From contig CM060731.1 in the NCBI GenBank assembly GCA_030704615.1, forward strand, positions 1,364,001 through 1,428,000: 64,000 nucleotides of DNA, read 5' to 3'. The stretch comes from Takakia lepidozioides. Its lineage: Eukaryota > Plantae > Bryophyta. Shown piece by piece: positions 520 through 45,667 of this stretch (position 1 is the first letter of the stretch; every line of letters begins with the position of its first letter). The notes beneath the pieces are model-generated. The model was not told where the DNA came from. It worked only from the letters and a program-made list of their open reading frames with translations, and did not search any database. The position numbers and the translations under genes are program-made.

Positions 520-3500
520 CACTAGAAGCATTCGTGTCATTTACCACTGGGATAACGACTCATTTTGAGTCGTAAAAATCAAAAAACAGGGATCGACTGG
601 AAGTTACAACAGACGTGGTAGTTGGGTTGGACATCCAATGATTGGAGTGGTAAAGGACGTAGACGCGCGAACAACTGCTCAGCGATTAATGCGATTAATG
701 CTGAAGAACCACGTGGCGTAACCAGGCGGGCCGCCCGTGTGTCTGATGTTTTGAGCTGACTTTGACTTTTCCCTCCGGATGAGTGGATTGACTCACCTAG
801 GGCGCGGTGACACATGGACGCGGACGTGGATGCGGACGTGGATGTCGATGTGGCGGCACCGCGACGAGCGGTAATGCCGCCGCGTGGCCACGGGCTCAAG
901 ACGCCACATCGCAGTCGGCCACATAACTTGGAGTGCTGCATGTCACGTGGCAACAGCCACTGGCGAAGTCGACTGCACAACTGCCGGCAGACAAATCCAC
1001 GGGGACCACGTGGAGAGTGTGTGGGTCGACGCGTGGCGTCGTCCCCACGCAATGGCAGTGAGGGGTACGACTGCTAGTGGAAAGACTCAGAGTGCTTGTG
1101 CCATCTCGGGACTGCTTTGGCCAACTCCGCTGCCACTATGCTAGTTGGTTGCACTACAGTAGGAAAGCACTGCAAATGAGCACTTGTAGTGGTTTGTGTG
1201 AGTTGTCCAACTGACTTGCATTCTAAGCTGAAAATATGGTTCTAATGCATTCTACTGGTTTTAGTGGTTCACCCATATGCAGGGGGAATTGAGAAGCAAT
1301 GATATTGGGCGACACTCAGAACACAGACCACGATGCATGCACAACATCACGCTAATGAACCAAATAGACGAGGCAATAGGGAGACCAAAGACCATCACAT
1401 ATACACATAGAAGGTGGACGGACACGACGACAAGTCAGGAAATGGAATATTGCATTCAAATTGGAGACCGTCGCGGCACACCTGCATATGAGCAAGACTA
1501 AATGCCAACATACATGGTTGCCGGACATCACTTAAACTGTCATGGCCCAAATGTACAAAACTGGTAACGTGAGTATCATACACACTTCTATGAGTATCAT
1601 TACACACCCAACATGGACTACAAACATGAAATGTCACTTGATACCTTCACCCCTCCTCATACTCTTCTCTGGCCACAGAGTCACCGTGCCTTTCACGTGC
1701 GCTAGTGTGGTCTGGGGGGGGGGCATCGTCCACATTTGGGCAAGGCAGTGTAACACTTGGAAGCATGATCTCGTGGACTTTCACCTTGTACCACCCGGAT
1801 GGAATGTCCTTGCAGTGGAACTTGTCAACCCCGGCTATTCCCACCACTTCCGCCTTGGCGGCGGCTGTCTTTGACCGCTTGTCATGGGGGTTCAGGAGAA
1901 ATACAGGATCTGATATCTGCAGACACCAACATCAGGGTCCACTCAGCAACAAACATAGCAATGACAGGGTGAAAGTCAAGCGCAGCTGGGCATGGAAACG
2001 ATCTTGGTTGCCACAATACTGAATCAGCAACAAATTCATGGTGTACCAACCTACCTTGAAGCGAAGCTCGTCGCTGAGGGTGGCAACTGAGGAAAGCTGC
2101 CCACGTGTATTCAACTGCAGCAGCAAAAAGAGGTTTAGTCAGACGGATAAGAATAACATGAACTCTGGTGGTTGCAATGGTATAAACACACCTCCACGGA
2201 GCAAGCTAACTTACACCCTGCTCAGACCGTGCACACTACAACCTCCTGGCAAAAATAACCCTACTAAAAACCAGCCAGGCAAAGCAAGGAGCCATGAATG
2301 CATGCCTTGGGAACCACGTCCTGCTGCGATGATGGTGCCGGGGACAGCCCACTCCTCTTGCTCACCTGCAATGAATACACATTGCAACGCTTCAGGAAGT
2401 GTATCCATAAAGGAAACCAACCAAGTAAGTTTGCGGAGAGGGCTGGGAACAACCATACCTTGGAGCCTGCCTCCTCATGCCGGGGGGGAAATCCGGAATG
2501 CTGCCGCCGTAGCACTATGGTCCTTGGCGTAGGACCCACCTTCTTCACAGACAACCCACTGCCACTCCCTGTACATGTGGTCCCTGCAAAACATATAGTG
2601 CCAGCCTTGCGTGAGAGGGCATCCGGGGGAACAAAACAAACATATCTTATCCATTGATGTCATGTTGCAAACAGTAAGGTTAGTTTCACCTGCATGGGCG
2701 CAGAAGTACTTCCCCCAACGACCCCATCCTCTCCCACATTCAAGCTGTCAGTCGGGGTCAGCTTCCGCGTGCTTGTGAAGACACGCACATCCTTGGAGCA
2801 AAACAAATCTTGGTAGTAGGGCCAGACTATTTCTAAAAGGTACTCTGAATCGGGCCCCTCACTGACATTGCTAGTGACATCAAACGACAATGGATGGACC
2901 ATGTTCAAAGGGGAGTTCCCCCTCCCCTTGTGTGGTGAATCATCCACTAGGAGGGTGTTGGATTCGTTAAATCCAGAAAATTCCGACCACACCCTCGACA
3001 GTCTCTTCTGTAAGTTCTGTACGGCAGGCCCTTTTGTGGGGTGTGGCTCTGTCAAGGGGTCACACTCCTCTTGTGACCACACAAAGAGGGGAGAACCCTT
3101 GACCCCCTGCATCACCACTTTGAAGATGTCTGCAACATTCCCCTTGTAAGCATAGGACCATATCCCAACGTAGAAATGCCGGAAGAGAAGGTTTAAAAAC
3201 TCGCAGACCTGGGGCCTTGGGAAAACATACTTGTTGGTGGTCAACACCCATGGCCAATGACGCCTCGGGTTGGGCTGAAAGTTAGGAATAGAGTGGCACA
3301 GGATCCCGTTCAGGTCTAGAACAATTAGTTTCGACTTTTCTATGAAAGGAGCTTTTGAAGGGGTGTCACGGGGTCTCACCTCAGTGGGTTGGGAGACAAT
3401 AGTCACCCCGGAGGGCAAAGTTTCGGTCCCCCTGCAGCCTGGACCAGGCAAACTACCACCCTCTCCCCCTACAGCTTCCCCTTTTCCCTTGATAGAATGA

Positions 3501-5505
3501 GCAATGACCCCCCATCGTCCATGTCATCCCCACCAACTCGCTGGATCTCTCCCTCTTCAACGAGTGGACCCTGCCCCCCACTGTGAATATCATCAACAAC
3601 AGGCTGGACCTCTGTCACATCCCTACCCACTACAATTACTTCCTCCTTCTCAGGTACAATGGTCGCAGCAGGGGGGTCTTCCATAATGCCACCCATCACA
3701 CCCCCTTTTTGCCTCATCATGAGTTCCACTATCTTCTTCAGTTGTGCTTCCATTCCCCTCTCCCGCTCCGCAGAGAGAGCCGCAAGCCTCTCTAGGGCCC
3801 CGATGCGGGCTGCCATTGAGTTCCCCGCTCCCTACGCATACAAACACCCACCCGTACTGTTAAAAACCAGAAGAAGAGGCCGAATGTGCAGGATTTCAGG
3901 CATTCGGAGATGGCTGGGTTTGGCATAACACCCCTCGTGTACCATGCGTGGGGGCCCCACATACCCACCAAATCTTAGTACAACAACAGATTCATGAATG
4001 GAAACCGGACTTCAAAACATACCTGGCTCAAAACAGACTCTGATGGGGTGCCAGTCGCATAGTTCTTTTGCTTCGCCCCGAGCTCGGACAGTGACAGGCT
4101 CCGCGCTTTGCGTCTTTTCTGTATTTGCCCATCCACACACTGTCAGTACATAATGCCAGGAGCATATGGACAAAGCACTGCCCTGCATATCACATAACAA
4201 CTAATTCTGCACAAGCAATAAAACCCACTCGTGGGTGTCTCTTCCATCAGAACATGCCACAACGTAGGAGCAATGAGAAGGGGGTGAGGAGATTACCAAA
4301 CGGGCTGCTTGGCCTGCAACTCCTGCCCGGCCCCAACGCGAGGGGTTCGTGACACAAGCACGTGCTTGCTTCATCCCTTCAGCCTTTGCAAGTCCACGAG
4401 GGGACTCCCAGTAGGCAACAAGCTTATCCCAATAGGCGGGTTCAGTGTTCATTGGCCTCACACTAGTCTTTGCCCATTTATCTTTCAGTTTTGCTCTTTC
4501 TCCTTTCATTATCTTCCCACATTGCTTCACTATAAAATCACGATTGGCAGGGATAGGTTTGTACTCGTACATTCCATTTATGCCCTCTATTACTGTTGAC
4601 ATGGCACTCTGGGACTGCTGGTCAATGTCTTGTACGCTTGAGTCAAGGTAACGCAATGCCAGGCCACGCAAATCACGCTGCCAGTGTTCCTTACCTTCGC
4701 AGCCAACATTGATGACTCCATTTCCATGCACCTCCACCTTGTGGCGCTTTAGCCCTACAGCCACCCTTCCCTCTCCATCTCCTTCCCATTGTTTCATGGC
4801 ATGGCGTCGTTCCTTCCTCAGCTCTGATGTCCATTTCCTGCCCCCATGCTCTGGAGCAGCGCCGTCATACGTTGTGGGGGGTGACTGATGTGTGCTGGAG
4901 GGGGAGGGCCGTATGGAGATGTGGGAGGCCCCCATTGTGACGTGCCAGCATCAGGAAGCCAGCGCCACGACCCCGAAGCAGGGGGGGCTCCCCATGGTGC
5001 ACTCTGTTGTGGAGACCATGCAGTAGGGGGTGGGTGCCAAGGTTGGTGTTGGTTGGCATTGTGTGGTGGCTGTGAGTGCTTTGATGCAGCTTCACTCCCC
5101 TTTCGCTGCCAAAAACATCCCACACACAAGGTGCATCAGCTGTAGTCCTACTGAACACAACGTCACCAGAGCACAAACGATCCCACAACCACAACTATGG
5201 ATTAGCTGACCTCAAACCCACTCCCCTGCAGCGCAAGTGCCAAAAACTGAAAAGGAGAGGGACAGAATGTCCTCATAACATGTAAGGCCATTCATTGGTG
5301 AAGAAACATAATGTGGGCGGGTTCACATCAGTACCATCATACACACTTACCAGGAAACCATTTCGGATGATAATGTCACTACTAGGTTCGAGTTCTCCGA
5401 AAGTATTTCCGTTTCCTCTGGTGTGGAGACCGTTGCAAGAAGTTGTGGTAATCGGAGGCGTCTTCAAACACATGCCTTGACTGCGAGCCGTTCGGGAGGA
5501 GGCTC
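520..5505 (-). mobile_element. CACTA/En-Spm DNA transposon, truncated: one terminus plus TnpA-like gene, TnpD largely missing
   Basis: CACTAG starts at 520, followed by the palindrome ACGACTCA-TTT-TGAGTCGT (556-574) and many CCACGTGG-like subterminal repeats (700-1070). The interior encodes Ptta/En-Spm-like and Tnp1-like domains on the minus strand. No matching second TIR or TSD was found near 5500. Confidence 0.72.
1634..4935 (-). CDS. Multi-exon TnpA-like (Tnp1/En/Spm) protein with an internal FCP1/NIF-family HAD phosphatase domain; two frameshifts in homopolymer runs
   Basis: Exon ~4935-4297 is Ptta/En-Spm-like (YWDKLVAYWESPRGLAKAEGMKQAR...SRWGRAG, then TTG|GTAAT). Exon ~4118-4023 reads KRRKARSLSLSELGAKQK...LSQ|GTATG. 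Exon ~3830-2690 holds a coiled coil and the phosphatase (LIVLDLNGIL, RPQVCEFL, VGIWS, LLVDDSPHKG). The last exon 1916-1634 is Tnp1-like (VFLLNP..AAAKAEVVG..FHCKDIPSGWYKVKV..LPCP..QTTL..GTVTLW). Exons between 2690 and 1916 were not resolved, and the start codon is uncertain. Confidence 0.7.
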
Positions 5506-6217
5506 TGTAATATTAATGGGTTAGTGTAAGCCGTTGTATGGCTTCGAGCCGCTGGATAACATTAAGTCCAACGGATGTACAGTTGACGTTACATTATGTC
5601 TGACTGCAACGCCAAAGTTGCAATCTCTAATAAAATATGTTTATCATCAATGTATGCGGACACATTCTTTCATGTCATCCTCTTCATCACATGTCATGAT
5701 TGTTCTATGTTTGGTTTTGTATGTCATCTATATGGTAACCATTTTGTGCAAAAAGTTTTACATATCTGACCTCACATCATGGTGTAATTTATTGCATCCT
5801 CCTATTTTTTTTGTGAACGTCAACTTGGCAGTGGATGTTATTCTAAAACCACAATACATACTTATAATATTGTCTCCAAAAACTGTTTGGAGGATTATAT
5901 TGTGCATAAAATAACCAAAATAATCATATATATCGCTTTATTTCAATAATACATTTTGTTTATTCATATTTCTCATATTATTTCTGGACCAAACAAAAGT
6001 CCAGAATTAGTTAAAATAGTGTTCACAAAATAATTTATGAATGATTTGACATGAAAAAATATTTTAAATGCTCATGCAAGAAAAAAAGAACTTGTGATAA
6101 TAAAGAAAGAGACTTCTTTTTATTTTGTTCTTTTGTTTTATCACATATTCACTTCCTTTTCAAGTCTCTACAGATTTTTGCATTCACATGGAAAAAATGA
6201 CCACCCACAATTTAGAA

Positions 6218-6428
6218 TATCAGATCAAGAGTCATAGATCGATGTGACAAACACAAGTTATTGAAATGAAATAGGAGCTTCAATACTTGTTTCGCTCATT
6301 GATAGCTAATTCAATTATAATTTGATACCACTTGAGGTGGTTGTATTTCACAAAATATTTGGCACCCTAGTATTGAATCTACACAACCACCTCAGATATT
6401 TTTCCTCATGTGAAAGCATGGGGTGTCA
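6218..6428. repeat. Dispersed LTR-like or MITE-like repeat, copy 1 (partial)
   Basis: Aligns by eye to ~41530-41738, sharing ATCAAGAGTC.TAGATCGATGTGACAA, TGAGGTGGTTGTATTTCACAAAATAT and TTTTTCCTCATGTGAAAGCATGGGGTGTCA. Confidence 0.85.
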
Positions 6429-6666
6429 GGTCCTTTCCAGACTAGTGACCAGACAAAACACTAAAAAACAACGTTTGTTCACCGTTTCGGCCGCTTCACA
6501 GATGCCATGTCATCAAAACTTGCGGGAAGTTGCGGGAACCCAGCGGACAAGCTTCACAGCGTTTTCATACCAAGTAGTGGACAAAAAAGGGTCCGCTGGA
6601 CAAGATATCTTGTCAGATTGTCTGGTTTTTTTACGAGATTTTTTGTGGATAGTATCGCACACAACC

Positions 6667-7792
6667 ATGGAGCCTTCGGGAAGTGATCTCCTTGCAACCC
6701 TTGCTCTTCAGTTTTCCATGTTCATTATTTTAGAGGCTATATCGAGTAGACATTCTCGAGCAATCAACAACCATCTCCAAACTGTATTGACCATGCTTCA
6801 CAGTTTGATATTGCAAGACAACAGGTCTGGTTGGAAGAAGAGAAGGATCCATGCATTTGAAAGACCTAAGGATTTTGCAGACATGGGATCTTACACTGCC
6901 ATAATGTTCAAAGATAGAATGCGCATGAGAAATTTTTTCGTACTTGTATGCACATGTAGCTCTTTTTATGAAGAAACAAGATACTAGGTGTTGAATTGTT
7001 ATTCCAGTGGAGACTAGGGTTGCTATTTCTATAGCAAGGTTGGCCACTGGTAGTACCTTGAGTATACTCTCAGATTGCGATGGAGTAGGAATTTCTACTG
7101 CTTAGAATATCGTGTTGGAATTTTGTCATGCACTGAAGACTAGGTGTCGTGATCTCTACATCAAATGGCCCTCTGCATCCAAAATGAAAGAGATGAGTAA
7201 AATCTTTACATGGTATAACATGGTGCATAGGGGCATGCACCTGATTATTATAACAGGAAAGGTTTTCATTGTCTTATTACAAGGCATTGTCGACACCTCA
7301 TGTTGCTTTTGGGACTATAATATACGGTGGTGTGGTAGTATTCATGACTGGAACCTGTTTGGAAAATCACATATTGGCCGTGTATGCCATAGTGGTGGCT
7401 TGAATCCCTATGCCCTTTTAAGTGATGTTGCTTACCAATGCAGGCCATGGATGTTTGCTTCATTTATTGGAATTACTGGGGAGCATGCAAATTGGAATTT
7501 TGTGCAACCAAGCTCAAGAATGTGCATAGAACGAGTTTTTGACATATTGAAGGGAAGATGGAGGATTTTATTAAAACAAATGGATTGCAATTTGGAATAT
7601 GTACCCATTCATGTTACAACTTGTGTGATTTTGCAAAATATCACCACCACTCACAAAGACTCATTCAACACTTCTTGGATTGAAGAAGATCAAGGTGATT
7701 TGCAAGCAAGCATTCAAAAAGGTCACACAGGCATGCATCAAGGCAAAAACATGAAACAACAACTGCAGCAGAGGGCACAATGTGGGAGATGA
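6667..7792 (+). pseudogene. Harbinger DDE transposase (HARBI1/DDE_Tnp_4-like), disrupted by frameshifts and stops
   Basis: Motifs VLLQGIVD..FWDY..WCGSIHD, LLSDVAY..PWM, WNFVQPSSRMCIERVFDILKGRWRIL and TCVILQN. The N-terminal part (FKDRMRM, IPVETRVAISIARLATG) is split across frames with in-frame stops. Confidence 0.88.
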
Positions 7793-10109: not shown

Positions 10110-11400
10110 TAAGTTTTTTAGTTTTTATTTTATTTTTTATTTTTTTATAGAACAGGGGGAAGAGGCCCTGGTTAATTTTATTTGGAGTTATTAGAGGGAA
10201 AAAAAATTAAAACCCTCGGGTACACCATTAGGCACACACACCGATGACGGTGAAGAACGAACCTTACTACTTAGAACTGAGTATTTGTCCAAGAAATGCG
10301 AGTCCATTCTACTCTTTACGAAGTACATATGGGTTGTGAACGCATACTTACGTCTTTCTACAGGTGAGTACTGCTTTAGATCTTGCAAATAATAGCTAGA
10401 AGATTAATGTGTTGCCTACCGAGCAACGGATCTAAGGATTGTCTTGAGAAACATAGAACTGCATCAAAGAACTGCCTAGAGACCGTAAGAGGAATGATTA
10501 ACATTCATTAGCGAAAGTGGAGCTTGGATTGCTTGGCGGCCTCCTTGACGTGCTTCCAGTTAATGTCTTTGTTGAACTCAAGCGATGCGGTGGAGTGCTG
10601 CACCAAGGTTGCTCCAGCAGGCCAGGGCTTGCTTGTTCCATTCGCAATGGTCGGGGGAGTGGCTGCTGCAGATGATGCCTTGATGCGCCCAGGTAGTGGA
10701 GAAGATAGAGTGCAGTTGCCCTCCGATCCGAGGATTTTTAAGAATTTTAGCACGTATTTTGTCCCAAGCTTTTCTTGCTTCCAGTTGTAGGTCATAGTAG
10801 ATGGTTGCGAGTAGGGCAGATATGGAACAAGTCGTCCCAGAGAACGTTTTTTACACCTTGCTTTCTATAGGTGCCATAGGGTTGTACTTCTGAGGGTGTC
10901 AAAGATATGACATTGACTAGCTGGTTGTTTTGTAGATTGGTTGTAGTTCAACCGTATGGAGAGCGAGGACCAGTCTTGAGCCCCCAAGGCATGTAGAAAA
11001 TCCGGATGTGGGCCATATTGCAGAAGGCAGTGTTCGTGGGTTTCCAGGGTTGCCTCGGAGCAACATTTGCAATGGAGAGCATCATCAAAACCCAACCATT
11101 CCCCTACCTTAAGCACTCTGTTGGCAATTTGCCACAAGAAAGCTGATACTTTTGCTGATCTGGTTTTTTTCCAGATGCACGTCGAGATGGTGTCCCATCT
11201 TTCCTCCAGAAAGTCAAAGTGACTCCATTTGCCATTCCACTTGGCTAGCATAGGCGGTGATTGAGAGAGGGCCGAGTACCCTTTCTTGGTGGTGTATGTA
11301 AAGAAGGGAGTAGGGGCTCTTCCTAATTTCCAGGACCATTCAGCTGGGTCGATAAAGTTTCTTAAAAAAGGCAACGGCAGCCAGAAATTCAACTAGAAAG
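10110..11400 (-). mobile_element. 5'-truncated L1-clade LINE: ORF2 C-terminal zf-RVT region, 3' UTR and A-rich tail
   Basis: ORF 10865-11392 contains IWKK..AKVSAFLWQIANRVL.VGEW...CKCC...ETHEHCL and TTLWHL, the zf-RVT pattern. The T-rich tract at ~10114-10147 on + is the A-rich tail on -. Confidence 0.8.
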
Positions 11401-16100: not shown

Positions 16101-19100
16101 GGCATTGTCCCGGTGCAAAGATGAAGCTCAGAAAGCCTCTTGCCAAGACATCATGAAGGAGGTGAGGACTTCTGACGATATCCCTAGTCTAACCTGGATT
16201 GTCATCAGGACAGTTAGCAGTCCTTCAGGATGCCTGTGTGTATCTCATGCAGGAGCAAACTCATCAATTCACTACTATCCCTTCTTATAAATCATTTCTC
16301 ACATTGCAAATCATTTCAAGCGTGGGGGATCAAAGGACAGTCTGTTGTCTCACCAGGGCTCAACTTTTCACCTTTTGGAAGCATGTGGGTACGTGTTTCC
16401 TTGACTGGAAGGAATTCACCGAACCCAAACAGCATTCTTAGTGCTTTTGATGATTCTTCTCACAAAGACGTTGATCGGACCATCCACAAGTTTCTAAGAG
16501 CTCTGATTGCAAATCACTTCAAGCGTGGGGGATCAAAGGACAGTTTGTTATCACACTGGGGCTCACCGTTTCACCTTTTGGAAGCATGTGTATACGTGTG
16601 TCCTTGACTGGAAGGAAGACAATGATTCTGTTTCACTGAACCCAAACAGCATTCTTAGTGCTTTAGATGATTCTCCTCACAAAGACGTTGATCGGACCAT
16701 CCACAAGTATGTTCAGAGATTGAGCTACTTGTGGGAGATTGGGGTGTTGCAGATGATAACAGCAGCTTCGCTGGATGGCTCTCTTTTTACCAAGGATTGG
16801 GATACAGAACCACTCTTCCCATTGCCCAGCATGCCATCAACATCAGGAGGAAAAGAGTATGCCTCCTTCTCCTACCCTGTATTTCACCTGATGGAGGACA
16901 AAGTGAATACCTGTGGGATAGTGATGTCATGTCTTTAGCTAATGATCTTAACTCTTAATCATGTGCCTAGTATCATGCTGTATTCTTTGACCTTGGTTGC
17001 CCATTTCGGAGCTTCTGTTATCATGGTATTGTTGCAGTGCATCTTTCAACTGCACTGCAGAGTAGACGCAGTGTGACATCTTTTGCGCCTGAGTGAGGAC
17101 AGATCCCCTAGGAAAAAAGCCACTTATTTGTTTCCACTCTTCTCAAAGGTGGAATTAGGCCATTGTGTTGATAGCAAAGTACACCTTGTGAGGGATTTGG
17201 GTTGCCATTGCTGCCAATAACCTGGCTGGGGCACATCACTATGGAAATGAGATCTGAAGCAAATTCTCGTAGACTCGTCAACTCTTTTGACCATTCTGGC
17301 CAGTCATTCTACAGTCACAAACGTTGTGGTAGGTCTTTGTGCAGAGATTCAGGGATTCAATTTTAGTGGTATATTTCGCTTTTTGCGTCAGCAATTTCTG
17401 ATTCTGTTCTCTTTCAAATACAGGCCTACTCGCCCAAAACCTGTGTTTCCTAATTGAAAGGTAGCGTGAAGGAGCTAAAATGCTGATGGTGAAGCTAGGA
17501 ACTCCAAAACAATTTGTTCTGGAACCATCCAGAAAAGTGGAGACTCCTTTGACTGGTGGTTGTGCGGGAATGTGTAGAGTAAAACAGCAAGGGAATGTGG
17601 CAACATTTCAGTCCAAAGTGGAGCGGAGTCCAAATAAGCGATCAAAAACCCGCTGGGAGCCTGTTGCATCAGATGACATAGAGGAGAAGCAAGGGCGCCC
17701 TCTTAGTTTACGTGGTGTTTCCAAGGAAAATTTTCAAGACCGCGCCAAGGACCGTGATGGCTCAGTAAGTTGTTTTTATCTTGTTCAAGGAGATCATATT
17801 GCCCTAACTAAGTTCATAATATTGTACATTACAGAATTCATAGGATGTCTCATTCTAGCTGCTTCCAGCAGCATTCGTGTTGGGCTTGCCTTCACATGTC
17901 TGTCATGGATAGACAATCTCTTGTGGATGCTTTTGGTCCATATGCATCTCTGCCGATGGTTGTAGATACAGGTCCTCGTGGTAGGCATCTTAGCTTTGCT
18001 TTTTCACCATGAAACCTTCATATTCACCATGATGCCTTTTCTGGAAATGCTTTCATCTACAGTTTTCCTTTCAGTTCTTCATGTATTTACTGCCTGCTAT
18101 TTTCTTAAGTCACTTTGCTGTAGGAGTATTTGATAAGTTGGCTTGAACAATCTTTTTTCTATCCCACCAGGGTATTATTTCTGGTCTACCATGACAGAAA
18201 GAAGGGATTTAGCTCTATATTAAGGCGAGGCTTGTTCTTTTGAAGCTTTGAGGGGGTGGGCTTTTATCAATACAGCCGTCTCTACGGAAACGAACCAGCT
18301 GAGTAGTGGTGGGTTCAGCAATGGGAACATAAGGCAGCTGACAAAACTTCCCTTCTTAGTGGTGGGCTTGAGTGTAGGGTTGAGTTATTCAGATTCTGTT
18401 TTACAACCTTTTAATGAAAACTGTAGTCAGTGTCTTCAGGTATGCAGAGTACATCACGTGCCAGCATGGGTAGTAGTTGATTACCCTTCGCTTTTCTGGC
18501 AAATTTAACAAATATAACAACAAATCAAAGCTCTAAATCTATCTATCAAATGGTGTTGTTGTTATTGTTGCAGGCTTCACCAATGAAATGGGACAAGAGG
18601 GAGGTGGCATGGAGTAAGAACAACACGTCACAGCATCAGCAGCCACAGGTGAAAGATACAGTTGTGGGCTTGGGGAGGCATGCTGGGTTTCACTTTGCTG
18701 CACAGCCTATGTCCACCAACACACACAAGCAACTGAGCTGATAAACTGGAAAGGATATTGTGAATATTCTGGGGTTGAAATAAATGTTTCATTCTGATTA
18801 GGAATATCTCAGGTACCATATCAATTTCTGAGTTGTATTTTCATTGGTCTTGTCTTCTACGGGTAGACCTTTACTCACACATGTGTTGGTTGGTGGTTTC
18901 AAAAACTTGGAATAGTTACAGGCAAAGAGGTTGAAAAGAGGACCCAAAAAATTTCACCAAGGCAATATGCAAAGTATGAACGGGGGCCTCAATACTTCCA
19001 GTGAAAGTGAAGAAGAGGAAGACCAAACTGGTAGCATGTATCTAGGCTCTTTGTCAGCAGCTGAAACGCCTGAAGAGAAGAAAAGGCGACAGAATCGTAC

Positions 19101-43682: not shown

Positions 43683-45667
43683 TCATAGTTCTATAGCTGG
43701 TCCTCGAGATCCATTCCCAGTGCCTAAACCATGGTGTGTGTCGTCGTACTCGGAGTTGCCATGTTTGGTTATGTCGTACTTCTCCCCATCACCCCACAGT
43801 GCATATGCCTCCTCACCATGCACTGCGTCATCACCAATTAACAAGTGCTCCTCAGTCATGCGCAGTGGAATCACAAGCCGGATGACCAAGAGGATAAGGG
43901 TGGTCATGACCGTGTTCCAGCCAATGATGAAGAGGGCTCCAGCAATCTGCTTGCCCAGCTGTTTCCCTCCCTTTCCACGATAAAATGCACCCTGCTCATT
44001 GGGGACTGAAAGAAAATAGTTGCACAAATGAGGTTCTGCAAACAGGCCAGTGAGCACACCTCCCAGGCTGCCTGCAACAGCATGGGTGTGGAACACACCC
44101 AGTGTGTCATCTACCTTCTGCAGCAGTGACGAGCGCCTGTGCAAAATCATCATTGTAAACCAGGGCACACTTCCTGCTACAATGCCCATCACTATGGCTG
44201 CCCATCCTTGCACCACACCTGTGCCACTATAATATGTCATTGCAGTACCACATTCAACCTACCAACCTACACCACAATGACGAAAAGGTTTGATACATTT
44301 CTACGGCTATAGACAAAAAGATGCAGCTTAGTTGACTGGAGTCATCTGCATAACAAACTAACCATGCTGCTCCAGCACAGAGCAAGATTTGGCCATGCAC
44401 ACAAATCAGACTGAATTCCTCTCTGAAGCTCCACACGAAAACAAGGGAGGTATTGTGAAGCACAATACCTGCTGAAGGCGTGATGACGACAAGGCCAGTG
44501 ATCATTCCCTGCACAGCACCAATGACAGAAGGCTTGCCAAATACCAGCACATCCAGGCCTGTCCAAATCAGTAAACTGGTGGCCGCACACACATTGGTAT
44601 TGATCACTGCCATGGATGCATCTATGTTTGCCGAGTAGGGATCACCGCCATTGAATCCTGCCCACCCCAGCCAGAGCAGTCCTGCACCAGCCAGCATGAG
44701 CACAACATTGTTGGGTGGAAAGCGTTCACGATCCTTGGTCAACCTTGGTCCCACCTACAGTTCCATGCCACCAAACTGATCACCAAATTAGACTTCGGGT
44801 AACATGTATATCTCTCTCCACTCAAACTTGCAAGGACGAATACCCTGCAAACACCGACTGCACACAAGCGATAATAGTAAACAACCTGTTTTCATCTACA
44901 TGAGAACCATGACCCCAGATTTGAGGTGAAGAGGCGCTCTGACATAGAGTGATAGGTACAACATGAGTCATAAAGACAGTGACAACTTTAAGATAACATC
45001 CATATTGATATTAGGAAATACATACCCAATAGGCTGCTACGAAGCCAGTCACTCCTGCTGACAGGTGAATGACATAACCACCAGAGTAATCAATCACACC
45101 CCATTGAAACAATAATCCTCCTCCCCAAATACTGAATGCACCCACTGTGTATGAGCATGTAAGCCACAGTGGCACAAACACCATCCACGCCCGGAAGTTC
45201 ATCCTCCCGAGCAATGAACCTGCAATCAGCAGTAGCGTGATGGCGGCGAAGACAAACTGAAAGTATACCATGGTGGCCATCGGATAATAGGGCATCAGCG
45301 CTGCGGTTTGTGCAGTTTTGGTGGCTGGCAGATCTGCTTGTTGTAGCAGGTACTCGAAGTTCAATACTGTGCCCGCCTTGCCCCACATAGGAATAAGCCT
45401 CTCTCCAAAGGACATTTTGTAGGCCCATATTACCCAGCACAACAACACTGCTGCAAAAGCATAGAACGCCATGAATGCCGAGTTGACAGCCCACTTCTTC
45501 TTCACGATACTGCCATAGAGGATCACCAGGCCTGGCACACTCTGCATTCCTACCAGGGTGGCAGCTGTCAATTGCCAAGCATTGTCGCCCTTGTTCAGCC
45601 AATCTGGCACCACCCCACCTGGATTTTGATACGCCGAGGGAACAGACAAAGGAGCAGCTGTAGCCAT
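43683..45667 (-). CDS. AMT2: Ammonium transporter, AMT2 family, 3 coding exons (45667-45026, 44754-44469, 44218-43683)
   Basis: Motifs [75 protein letters not shown] and [19 protein letters not shown]. Both pore histidines are present. Confidence 0.97.

Follow-up and report, generated by a model that had tools for sequence, protein, structure and literature searches.

A NIF/FCP1-homology domain within the predicted accessory gene of a high-copy DNA transposon family in Takakia lepidozioides

Introduction

Can a plant transposon carry a phosphatase-like domain as an integral part of its own protein, or is such a domain only a piece of host sequence caught up in a repeat? The question is raised by a 64,000 nt stretch of Takakia lepidozioides DNA (CM060731.1, positions 1,364,001-1,428,000; hereafter the window, with all coordinates given as window positions), in which a first-pass annotation of the letters alone had described, on the minus strand, a CACTA transposon protein of the TnpA type fused to a complete NIF/FCP1-type domain of the HAD fold (PF03031). 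We read the segment from 1150 (or 520) to 5358 as the 3' portion of a single copy from a DNA transposon family of high copy number, most likely CACTA/EnSpm-like, with a TnpA-like accessory gene that includes the NIF domain in frame, and assign this reading a probability of roughly 0.6.

TnpA and VANC are the best-known means of plant transposons to escape silencing, and host-derived domains are found on transposons in the form of the ULP1 protease in CACTA and Mutator-like (MULE) elements and of VANC in VANDAL elements. The ULP1-bearing elements and VANC likewise represent a host-type domain or accessory protein on a DNA transposon; fold and presumed chemistry differ from those of the family described here, which is known from sequence only. 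The TnpA of Arabidopsis Spm is reported to counter silencing in a sequence-specific manner at clusters of subterminal motifs, and TnpA-like proteins are apparently confined to flowering plants according to a RepBase-based survey; accessory domains of various kinds are mentioned in the same work, and the terms "phosphatase", "hydrolase" and "HAD" are absent from its text (10.64898/2026.08.24.746577). A literature search combining CACTA, TnpA or transposable element with NIF, FCP1 homology or carboxy-terminal domain (CTD) phosphatase returned nothing relevant. The fusion of a NIF/FCP1 domain into a transposon accessory gene thus seems to be undescribed, as the first-pass annotation had supposed.

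Results and Discussion

An in-frame NIF module in the predicted protein of the family

For comparison with other copies, window positions 1100-5400 were aligned with the contigs of four public sequencing runs at a threshold of 85% identity. These are named X2, X4, X11 and X12, X2 being a DNA run and X11 and X12 probable RNA runs; L001 denotes a Logan contig from X4. Exon boundaries were read directly from the sequence (GT-AG signals and frames). The accessory gene would consist of exon A (Pro-rich and weakly Transposase_24-like), exon B, a long exon with linker and NIF, and then three small exons; the GT-AG junctions are canonical, and every predicted one is in phase 0.

5105-4297, minus strand: exon A, with Pro-rich region, conserved region and Transposase_24-like end at 4297-4440; donor GT 4296-4295, predicted acceptor 5107-5106
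4139-4023, minus strand: exon B, 39 codons, phase 0 at both ends; acceptor ctgacag/TGT, donor CAG/gtatgt
3831-2690, minus strand: exon C with NIF; helical/acidic linker from 3831 to about 3470, then NIF; donor CAG/gtgaaa after 2690
2786-3331, minus strand: NIF/FCP1-homology HAD domain (PF03031) of the DxNG clade; motif I LDLNGIL, motif IV LLVDDSP
2583-2459, minus strand: exon E5, 42 codons in the X2/X4 variant and one base short in the window; acceptor ttttgcag/GGA, donor AAG/gtatgg
2114-2055, minus strand: exon E7, 20 codons, phase 0 at both ends; acceptor ctgcag/TTG, donor AAG/gtaggt
1916-1650, stop 1649-1647, minus strand: last exon E8, 89 codons plus stop; acceptor AG 1918-1917, phase 0

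The complete NIF/FCP1-type domain, originally placed at 2750-3340, is borne out by the profile search. The open reading frame (ORF) 2660-3451 on the minus strand matches PF03031 over profile positions 1-159 of 160 with an E-value of 5.5e-13 and 49.4 bits, passing the Pfam gathering cut-off of 21.8 bits, and the domain lies at 2786-3331.

In the window copy itself two frames are offset by one base at the C6 run 3508-3513: that of the helical exon meets a stop at 3469-3471, and that of NIF opens only at 3523. An X2 DNA contig spanning 3267-3602 at a depth of 1105 carries an additional C after 3507, two bases fewer at 3495 and one base fewer at 3491. Application of these three indels yields a continuous frame of about 389 codons, leading from the exon C acceptor into NIF, with C6 versus C7 at 3508-3513 as the sole frame-relevant change at this junction. 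Because the high-depth C7 variant is a single open exon of this length, the fusion is real for the family, and NIF is an integral in-frame module of the transposon family's protein. The originally proposed fused protein therefore holds in its collinearity, and as one frame in the high-depth X2 variant; in the window copy its parts lie in separate frames.

The same type of difference recurs along the gene. At the G run 4900-4904, L001 has one base more than the frameshifted window, resulting in a 296-aa open frame through the Pro-rich region and exon A, and this extra base is present in about half of the X2 depth at that position (1301.6 of 2253.5). At the C run 2555-2557 the window is frameshifted in E5, which is open and in phase 0 with the variant's additional C at 2554. 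Within the last exon, one C fewer in the run 1714-1723, seen in a probable RNA contig and in part of the X2 contigs, alters the C-terminal tail. Wherever the window departs from the majority variant in a way that breaks the frame (exon A, exon C/NIF, E5 and, probably, the last exon), the change is one base in the length of a homopolymer, which represents either real decay of the window copy or a long-read assembly error. Of the 12 indels listed in the comparison of the window with public contigs, 7 adjoin homopolymer runs; homopolymer-length errors in the assembly may consequently affect every ORF call in this genome.

The family is high-copy and probably transcribed and spliced

In total 355 contig pieces from X2 aligned to 1100-5400, of which 161 showed at least 99% identity, 137 were 95-99% identical, 39 were 90-95% identical and 18 fell below 90%. 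Depth across the stretch was 1000-7000, compared with 13-35 for rare variants and 60 for one neighbouring bin. The NIF-bearing family is thus high-copy, in agreement with the multi-copy nature that a CACTA family of this kind had been expected to show.

Contigs of the probable RNA runs provide insight into the splicing of related copies. An X12 contig joins 3833/4297 with 94 diverged letters between, at the place of exon B. One side of the joint coincides with the donor predicted for exon A, the other falls within 2 nt of the acceptor predicted for exon C, and such a joint occurs in no DNA contig of the run comparison. Furthermore, two probable RNA contigs both stop at 5102, beside the predicted exon A acceptor (5107-5106), and others match parts of exon A and exon C, the NIF segment 3214-3385 (88% identity) and 1670-1808 in the last exon (approximately 97%). 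Exon E7 (2055-2114) remains a prediction from sequence, being matched by no RNA contig in this comparison. Related family copies are probably transcribed and spliced. The phase-compatible GT-AG introns that had been proposed to join the upstream pieces are confirmed by the phase-0 junctions read here and by the X12 joint; of the proposed single fused transcript, the X12 contig covers the exon A-exon C joint, and a continuation to NIF is found in none of the contigs.

Separate from these, a stretch of 55 nt at 2909-2963, the region of motif IV LLVDDSP, matches a 1248-nt X11 contig (depth 45) and a 624-nt X12 contig at 89% identity, both flanks being unlike the window. Contigs matching only this stretch may stem from a host NIF gene or from another, more highly expressed NIF-bearing element.

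The NIF domain belongs to a DxNG clade and shows signs of constraint

Motif I of the window NIF reads D-L-N-G-I, with the first Asp (the nucleophile) kept and the second replaced by Asn, so that the DxDxT signature is absent. Motif II (S123), motif III (K173) and motif IV (D194-D195; numbering of the 287-aa frame) are present and conserved across relatives. A phmmer search with NIF against 1.84 billion representative proteins retrieved 1565 relatives, none closer than 46% identity. The best matches come from Sphagnum (a 588-aa double-NIF protein, 35% identity) and from Asteraceae (proteins combining two NIF domains with DUF724). DxNG was found in 118 of 132 aligned high-scoring segment pairs from the best 150 of these relatives. 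The Asn in motif I was considered as a sign of decay in the window copy and rejected, the trait being clade-wide. In an alignment of 12 sequences (the window domain and those of 11 relatives), all 23 invariant columns are present in the window NIF.

The closest relatives, with 28-46% identity, are the plant and fungal "FCP1 homology domain-containing protein C1271.03c-like" proteins, which share DxNG and the 23 invariant columns. Unlike the window NIF, these belong to host genes, in combination with different partner domains. Among the 63 relatives of at least 450 aa, none has a transposase-type Pfam domain, their partners being CCCH zinc fingers, DUF724 and GeBP, which agrees with the apparent novelty of the fusion. 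We found no characterized member of this clade in the literature. A word-index search with the NIF ORF gave no match in the 145-460 aa range, and a metagenome contig scan with NIF gave none either.

With regard to solved structures, phmmer of NIF against the PDB gave no match; a profile search did find relatives, the nearest being UBLCP1 (PDB 3shq; E 4.8e-12 over the whole domain), and the profile match to SCP1 covers the N-terminal third only, with an E-value of 1e-5 or weaker. UBLCP1, which acts on the proteasome, shares the HAD core, the Ser/Thr of motif II, the Lys of motif III and the Asp-Asp of motif IV. It differs in having the catalytic DxDxT and a ubiquitin-like domain, whereas the window NIF has DLNGI and no such domain. 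The RNA polymerase II CTD phosphatases SCP1 and FCP1 share the Pfam family PF03031, and the window NIF lacks their general acid/base Asp. The action on the polymerase CTD that had been suggested by analogy to FCP1/SCP is not favored by a DLNGI motif I and a nearest solved relative that is neither SCP1 nor FCP1.

Comparison between subfamilies suggests purifying selection on exon A: the 33 differences listed between the window and the expressed subfamily at 4544-4791 comprise 13 synonymous and 14 nonsynonymous codons, 17 of the 33 lying in third positions. For NIF, the signs of constraint are indirect. The domain is alignable at 88% identity in the expressed subfamily, while the linker beyond 3385-3403 fails the 85% threshold, and this retained alignability together with the 23 invariant columns points to a constraint on NIF between subfamilies.

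These data bear directly on whether the domain is of use to the element. In the alternative case, a host NIF fragment would have been transduplicated into a non-autonomous Pack-type element and amplified with it, the open frame being a relic of recent capture and the domain useless to its carrier. CACTA and MULE elements commonly capture genes (PMC6379663), and the window copy, frame-damaged and without transposase, would fit such passive cargo. Several features argue against it: the domain is complete and in frame within a long exon shared with the upstream linker, and phase-compatible exons follow it. A sequence at most 35-46% identical to any of the 1.84 billion representative proteins has nevertheless kept all invariant columns of its closest relatives, and NIF is alignable in a subfamily diverged by 12% in DNA, where the adjacent linker is not at the threshold used. 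Considering both sides, we regard passive capture as unlikely, albeit as an explanation to be taken seriously.

Assignment to a transposon superfamily

The TnpA-like character of the protein depends on exon A. ORF 4201-4935 on the minus strand, scanned in unspliced form, matches profile positions 2-50 of 138 of Transposase_24 (PF03004) with E-values of 0.015-0.09 and 13-16 bits, which is below the Pfam cut-off of 28.7 bits. The match ends exactly at the predicted exon A donor, and as a test of one pre-named family its chance probability amounts to approximately 1e-6 (E divided by the 24736 Pfam models). An Atlas feature search with exon A placed at rank 5 a cluster with PF03004 in 71% of its members. 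Based on these matches, the protein part encoded by exon A is likely TnpA-like. Of the Ptta/En-Spm-like domain described at first, a Transposase_24-like stretch at the end of exon A is retained, at a significance below the cut-off. A word-index search with exon A in 5.8 billion protein clusters found a Logan contig of the same family as the sole resembling sequence.

The Tnp1/DUF8039-like domain that had been assigned to the C-terminus was not recovered: for the C-terminal piece (1650-1931), taken in both frames around the homopolymer, there was no Pfam match at E-values up to 10, and the best Atlas score was 0.77. The homopolymer frameshift in the last exon may mask such a match. A DNA-binding helix-turn-helix region was not found in the truncated window copy. 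Single-sequence AlphaFold models, with a pLDDT of only 42-43 for exon A (168 aa) as well as for the C-terminal piece (94 aa), were too poor for a fold search and were not used.

The overall architecture resembles that of maize En/Spm TnpA and the Arabidopsis Spm TnpA-like accessory proteins, to which the Pfam family Transposase_24 corresponds: the window has a multi-exon accessory gene in the 3' part of a DNA transposon, with a weak match to the start of Transposase_24 and a helical region behind it. In contrast, no described TnpA carries NIF/HAD; in the window the match is below the cut-off and the host is a non-seed plant.

With respect to the ends of the element, the following features were recorded.

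5358..5359, unstranded: break point, at which the family sequence ends and an unrelated repeat starts
520..536, plus strand: uncertain candidate outer terminus, CACTAGAAGCATTCGTG, with the CACTA-like string CACTAGAAGC at 520; single occurrence
618..1045, unstranded: cluster of about eight CCACGT/ACGTGG motifs in both orientations, from a k-mer count; outside the run comparison, which began at 1100
1152..1190, unstranded: 39-nt palindrome-like unit, candidate inner terminus or footprint, CACTACAGTAGG...CACTTGTAGTG, with a CACTA-like string on both strands; occurs once

Contigs from both sides of 5358/5359 run on into unlike sequence in X2 as well as X4, which shows that the copy was cut inside the intron upstream of exon A. 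As a consequence of this break, the upstream exons and any transposase gene have been lost from the window copy. Continuations of other copies beyond 5358/5359 were found in the window in neither direction, and self-BLAST and tBLASTn revealed no further family fragments there. A TnpD-type transposase is not present among the scanned window ORFs of at least 130 aa; since the copy is truncated, this absence is uninformative on the family.

On the opposite side, the test for a paired CACTA terminal inverted repeat (TIR) gave one-sided candidates only (1152 and 520), the other end of the element lying beyond the break at 5358. Neither the 520 candidate nor CACTACAGTAGG at 1152 has an inverted partner in the window; a short inverted match to the 520 candidate, CTGCTAGTG at 1071-1081, has differing flanking triplets. 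Occurrences of the canonical CACTACAAGAAA in the window were at chance level only. The location inside a CACTA terminus claimed at the outset is consequently reduced to these candidate strings. An X4 contig collinear from 1316 to below 1100 at interior depth argues against 1152 as the true element end. The CCACGT cluster possibly represents candidate subterminal binding repeats, or is unrelated. In the AT-richer block just past 5358, a PIF/Harbinger-type DDE_Tnp_4 transposase ORF is found at 7112-7792 on the plus strand (Pfam E 7.5e-13) together with an ORF at 6322-6987, also on the plus strand.

The superfamily is unproven, because no transposase gene, paired TIR or target site duplication (TSD) is visible in the window, and membership of the element in CACTA is plausible. 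The repeat could instead belong to another DNA-transposon superfamily or be unclassified, with the Transposase_24 likeness being due to chance or very remote. This would accord with a match that is partial and below the Pfam cut-off, with the lack of TnpD, paired TIR or TSD in the window, and with a non-seed plant host for a protein type recorded from flowering plants only (10.64898/2026.08.24.746577). It would leave as coincidences that the sole Pfam family on exon A is a pre-named plant transposase family, matched in the right place and ending at an exon boundary, that a PF03004 cluster is among the nearest Atlas neighbours, and that CACTA-like strings occur at 1152 and 520. We therefore judge a non-CACTA origin to be rather improbable. 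A host multigene NIF family, domesticated or never mobile, with a pseudogene in the window, is very improbable: the DxNG clade forms a large family of host genes whose partners vary (CCCH zinc fingers, DUF724, GeBP) and transcripts exist as probable RNA contigs, yet the depth exceeds that of rare variants hundreds-fold, short variant contigs number in the hundreds, the join to an unrelated repeat at 5358 is abrupt, and exon A resembles nothing in 5.8 billion clusters but the contig of its own family.

Several observations weigh against the interpretation as a high-copy CACTA-like element with an in-frame NIF domain. Six substitutions in the X2 contig bridging exon C and NIF are unlisted, and a stop among them is possible in principle. 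The indels listed for X4 at this junction (an additional C after 3507 and one base fewer at 3491) sum to zero; the X4 copy would accordingly stay frame-broken there, three gap letters being unlisted. The copy number was read from k-mer depth without a single-copy baseline. The RNA label of X11 and X12 is a guess of the tool used, and no contig spans exon A to NIF in these runs. The Transposase_24 match on exon A is sub-threshold, with the rest of the profile unmatched in exons B and C, and neither a transposase gene nor a paired TIR or TSD is visible in the window. Between the window and L001, approximately 12 of 16 substitutions in exon A are nonsynonymous, which looks neutral, a pattern that young dead copies would be expected to show; the codon-change counts cover exon A only.

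A possible role of the fused domain

Under the reading of the family as a transposon with a TnpA-like accessory protein, this protein would, like TnpA, bind subterminal DNA of its own element and thereby bring the NIF-like module there. Because Asn replaces the general acid/base Asp while the nucleophile Asp and motifs II-IV are kept, we expect the module itself to work slowly, to trap a phosphoprotein or only to bind it, and not to act as a fast CTD phosphatase. The CTD of RNA polymerase II, IV or V would be just one among several possible targets. An anti-silencing role of the fusion protein comparable to that of VANC is purely speculative. Taken together, a transposon family of a non-seed plant may hold a DxNG module on its own ends via a TnpA-like protein, the module binding or slowly dephosphorylating a chromatin- or transcription-associated phosphoprotein (polymerase CTD, silencing factor or proteasome) and thus promoting expression or transposition of the element; as a complete chain we consider this a long shot.

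If true, this would add a new class to the counter-silencing modules of transposons, and the DxNG clade would gain its first assigned function. A family with an uncharacterized phosphatase-like module built in, kept across subfamilies and amplified to high copy number would make two questions testable, namely the function of the DxNG branch and which host phosphoprotein is useful to a transposon. Should NIF be inert cargo, the family would be one more case of gene capture.

Other features of the window

Apart from the element, the window contains a probable remnant of a long interspersed nuclear element (LINE): an ORF at 10865-11392 on the minus strand, whose zf-RVT match (E 1e-5) narrowly misses the Pfam cut-off. 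A tandem duplication at 16298-16708 has a unit of approximately 200 nt, with 117-nt and 77-nt pairs at 89-96% identity. At 43683-45667, also on the minus strand, a gene for an AMT2-type ammonium transporter is represented by three ORF pieces that together span Pfam positions 1-399; between pieces two and three lies an apparent GT-AG intron of only about 44 nt. In keeping with a non-seed plant host, perhaps a bryophyte, which the Sphagnum match of NIF suggests as well, the best named match of the transporter exon at 45011-45667 comes from Marchantia (77%), and no protein in the collection exceeds 83% identity to this exon.

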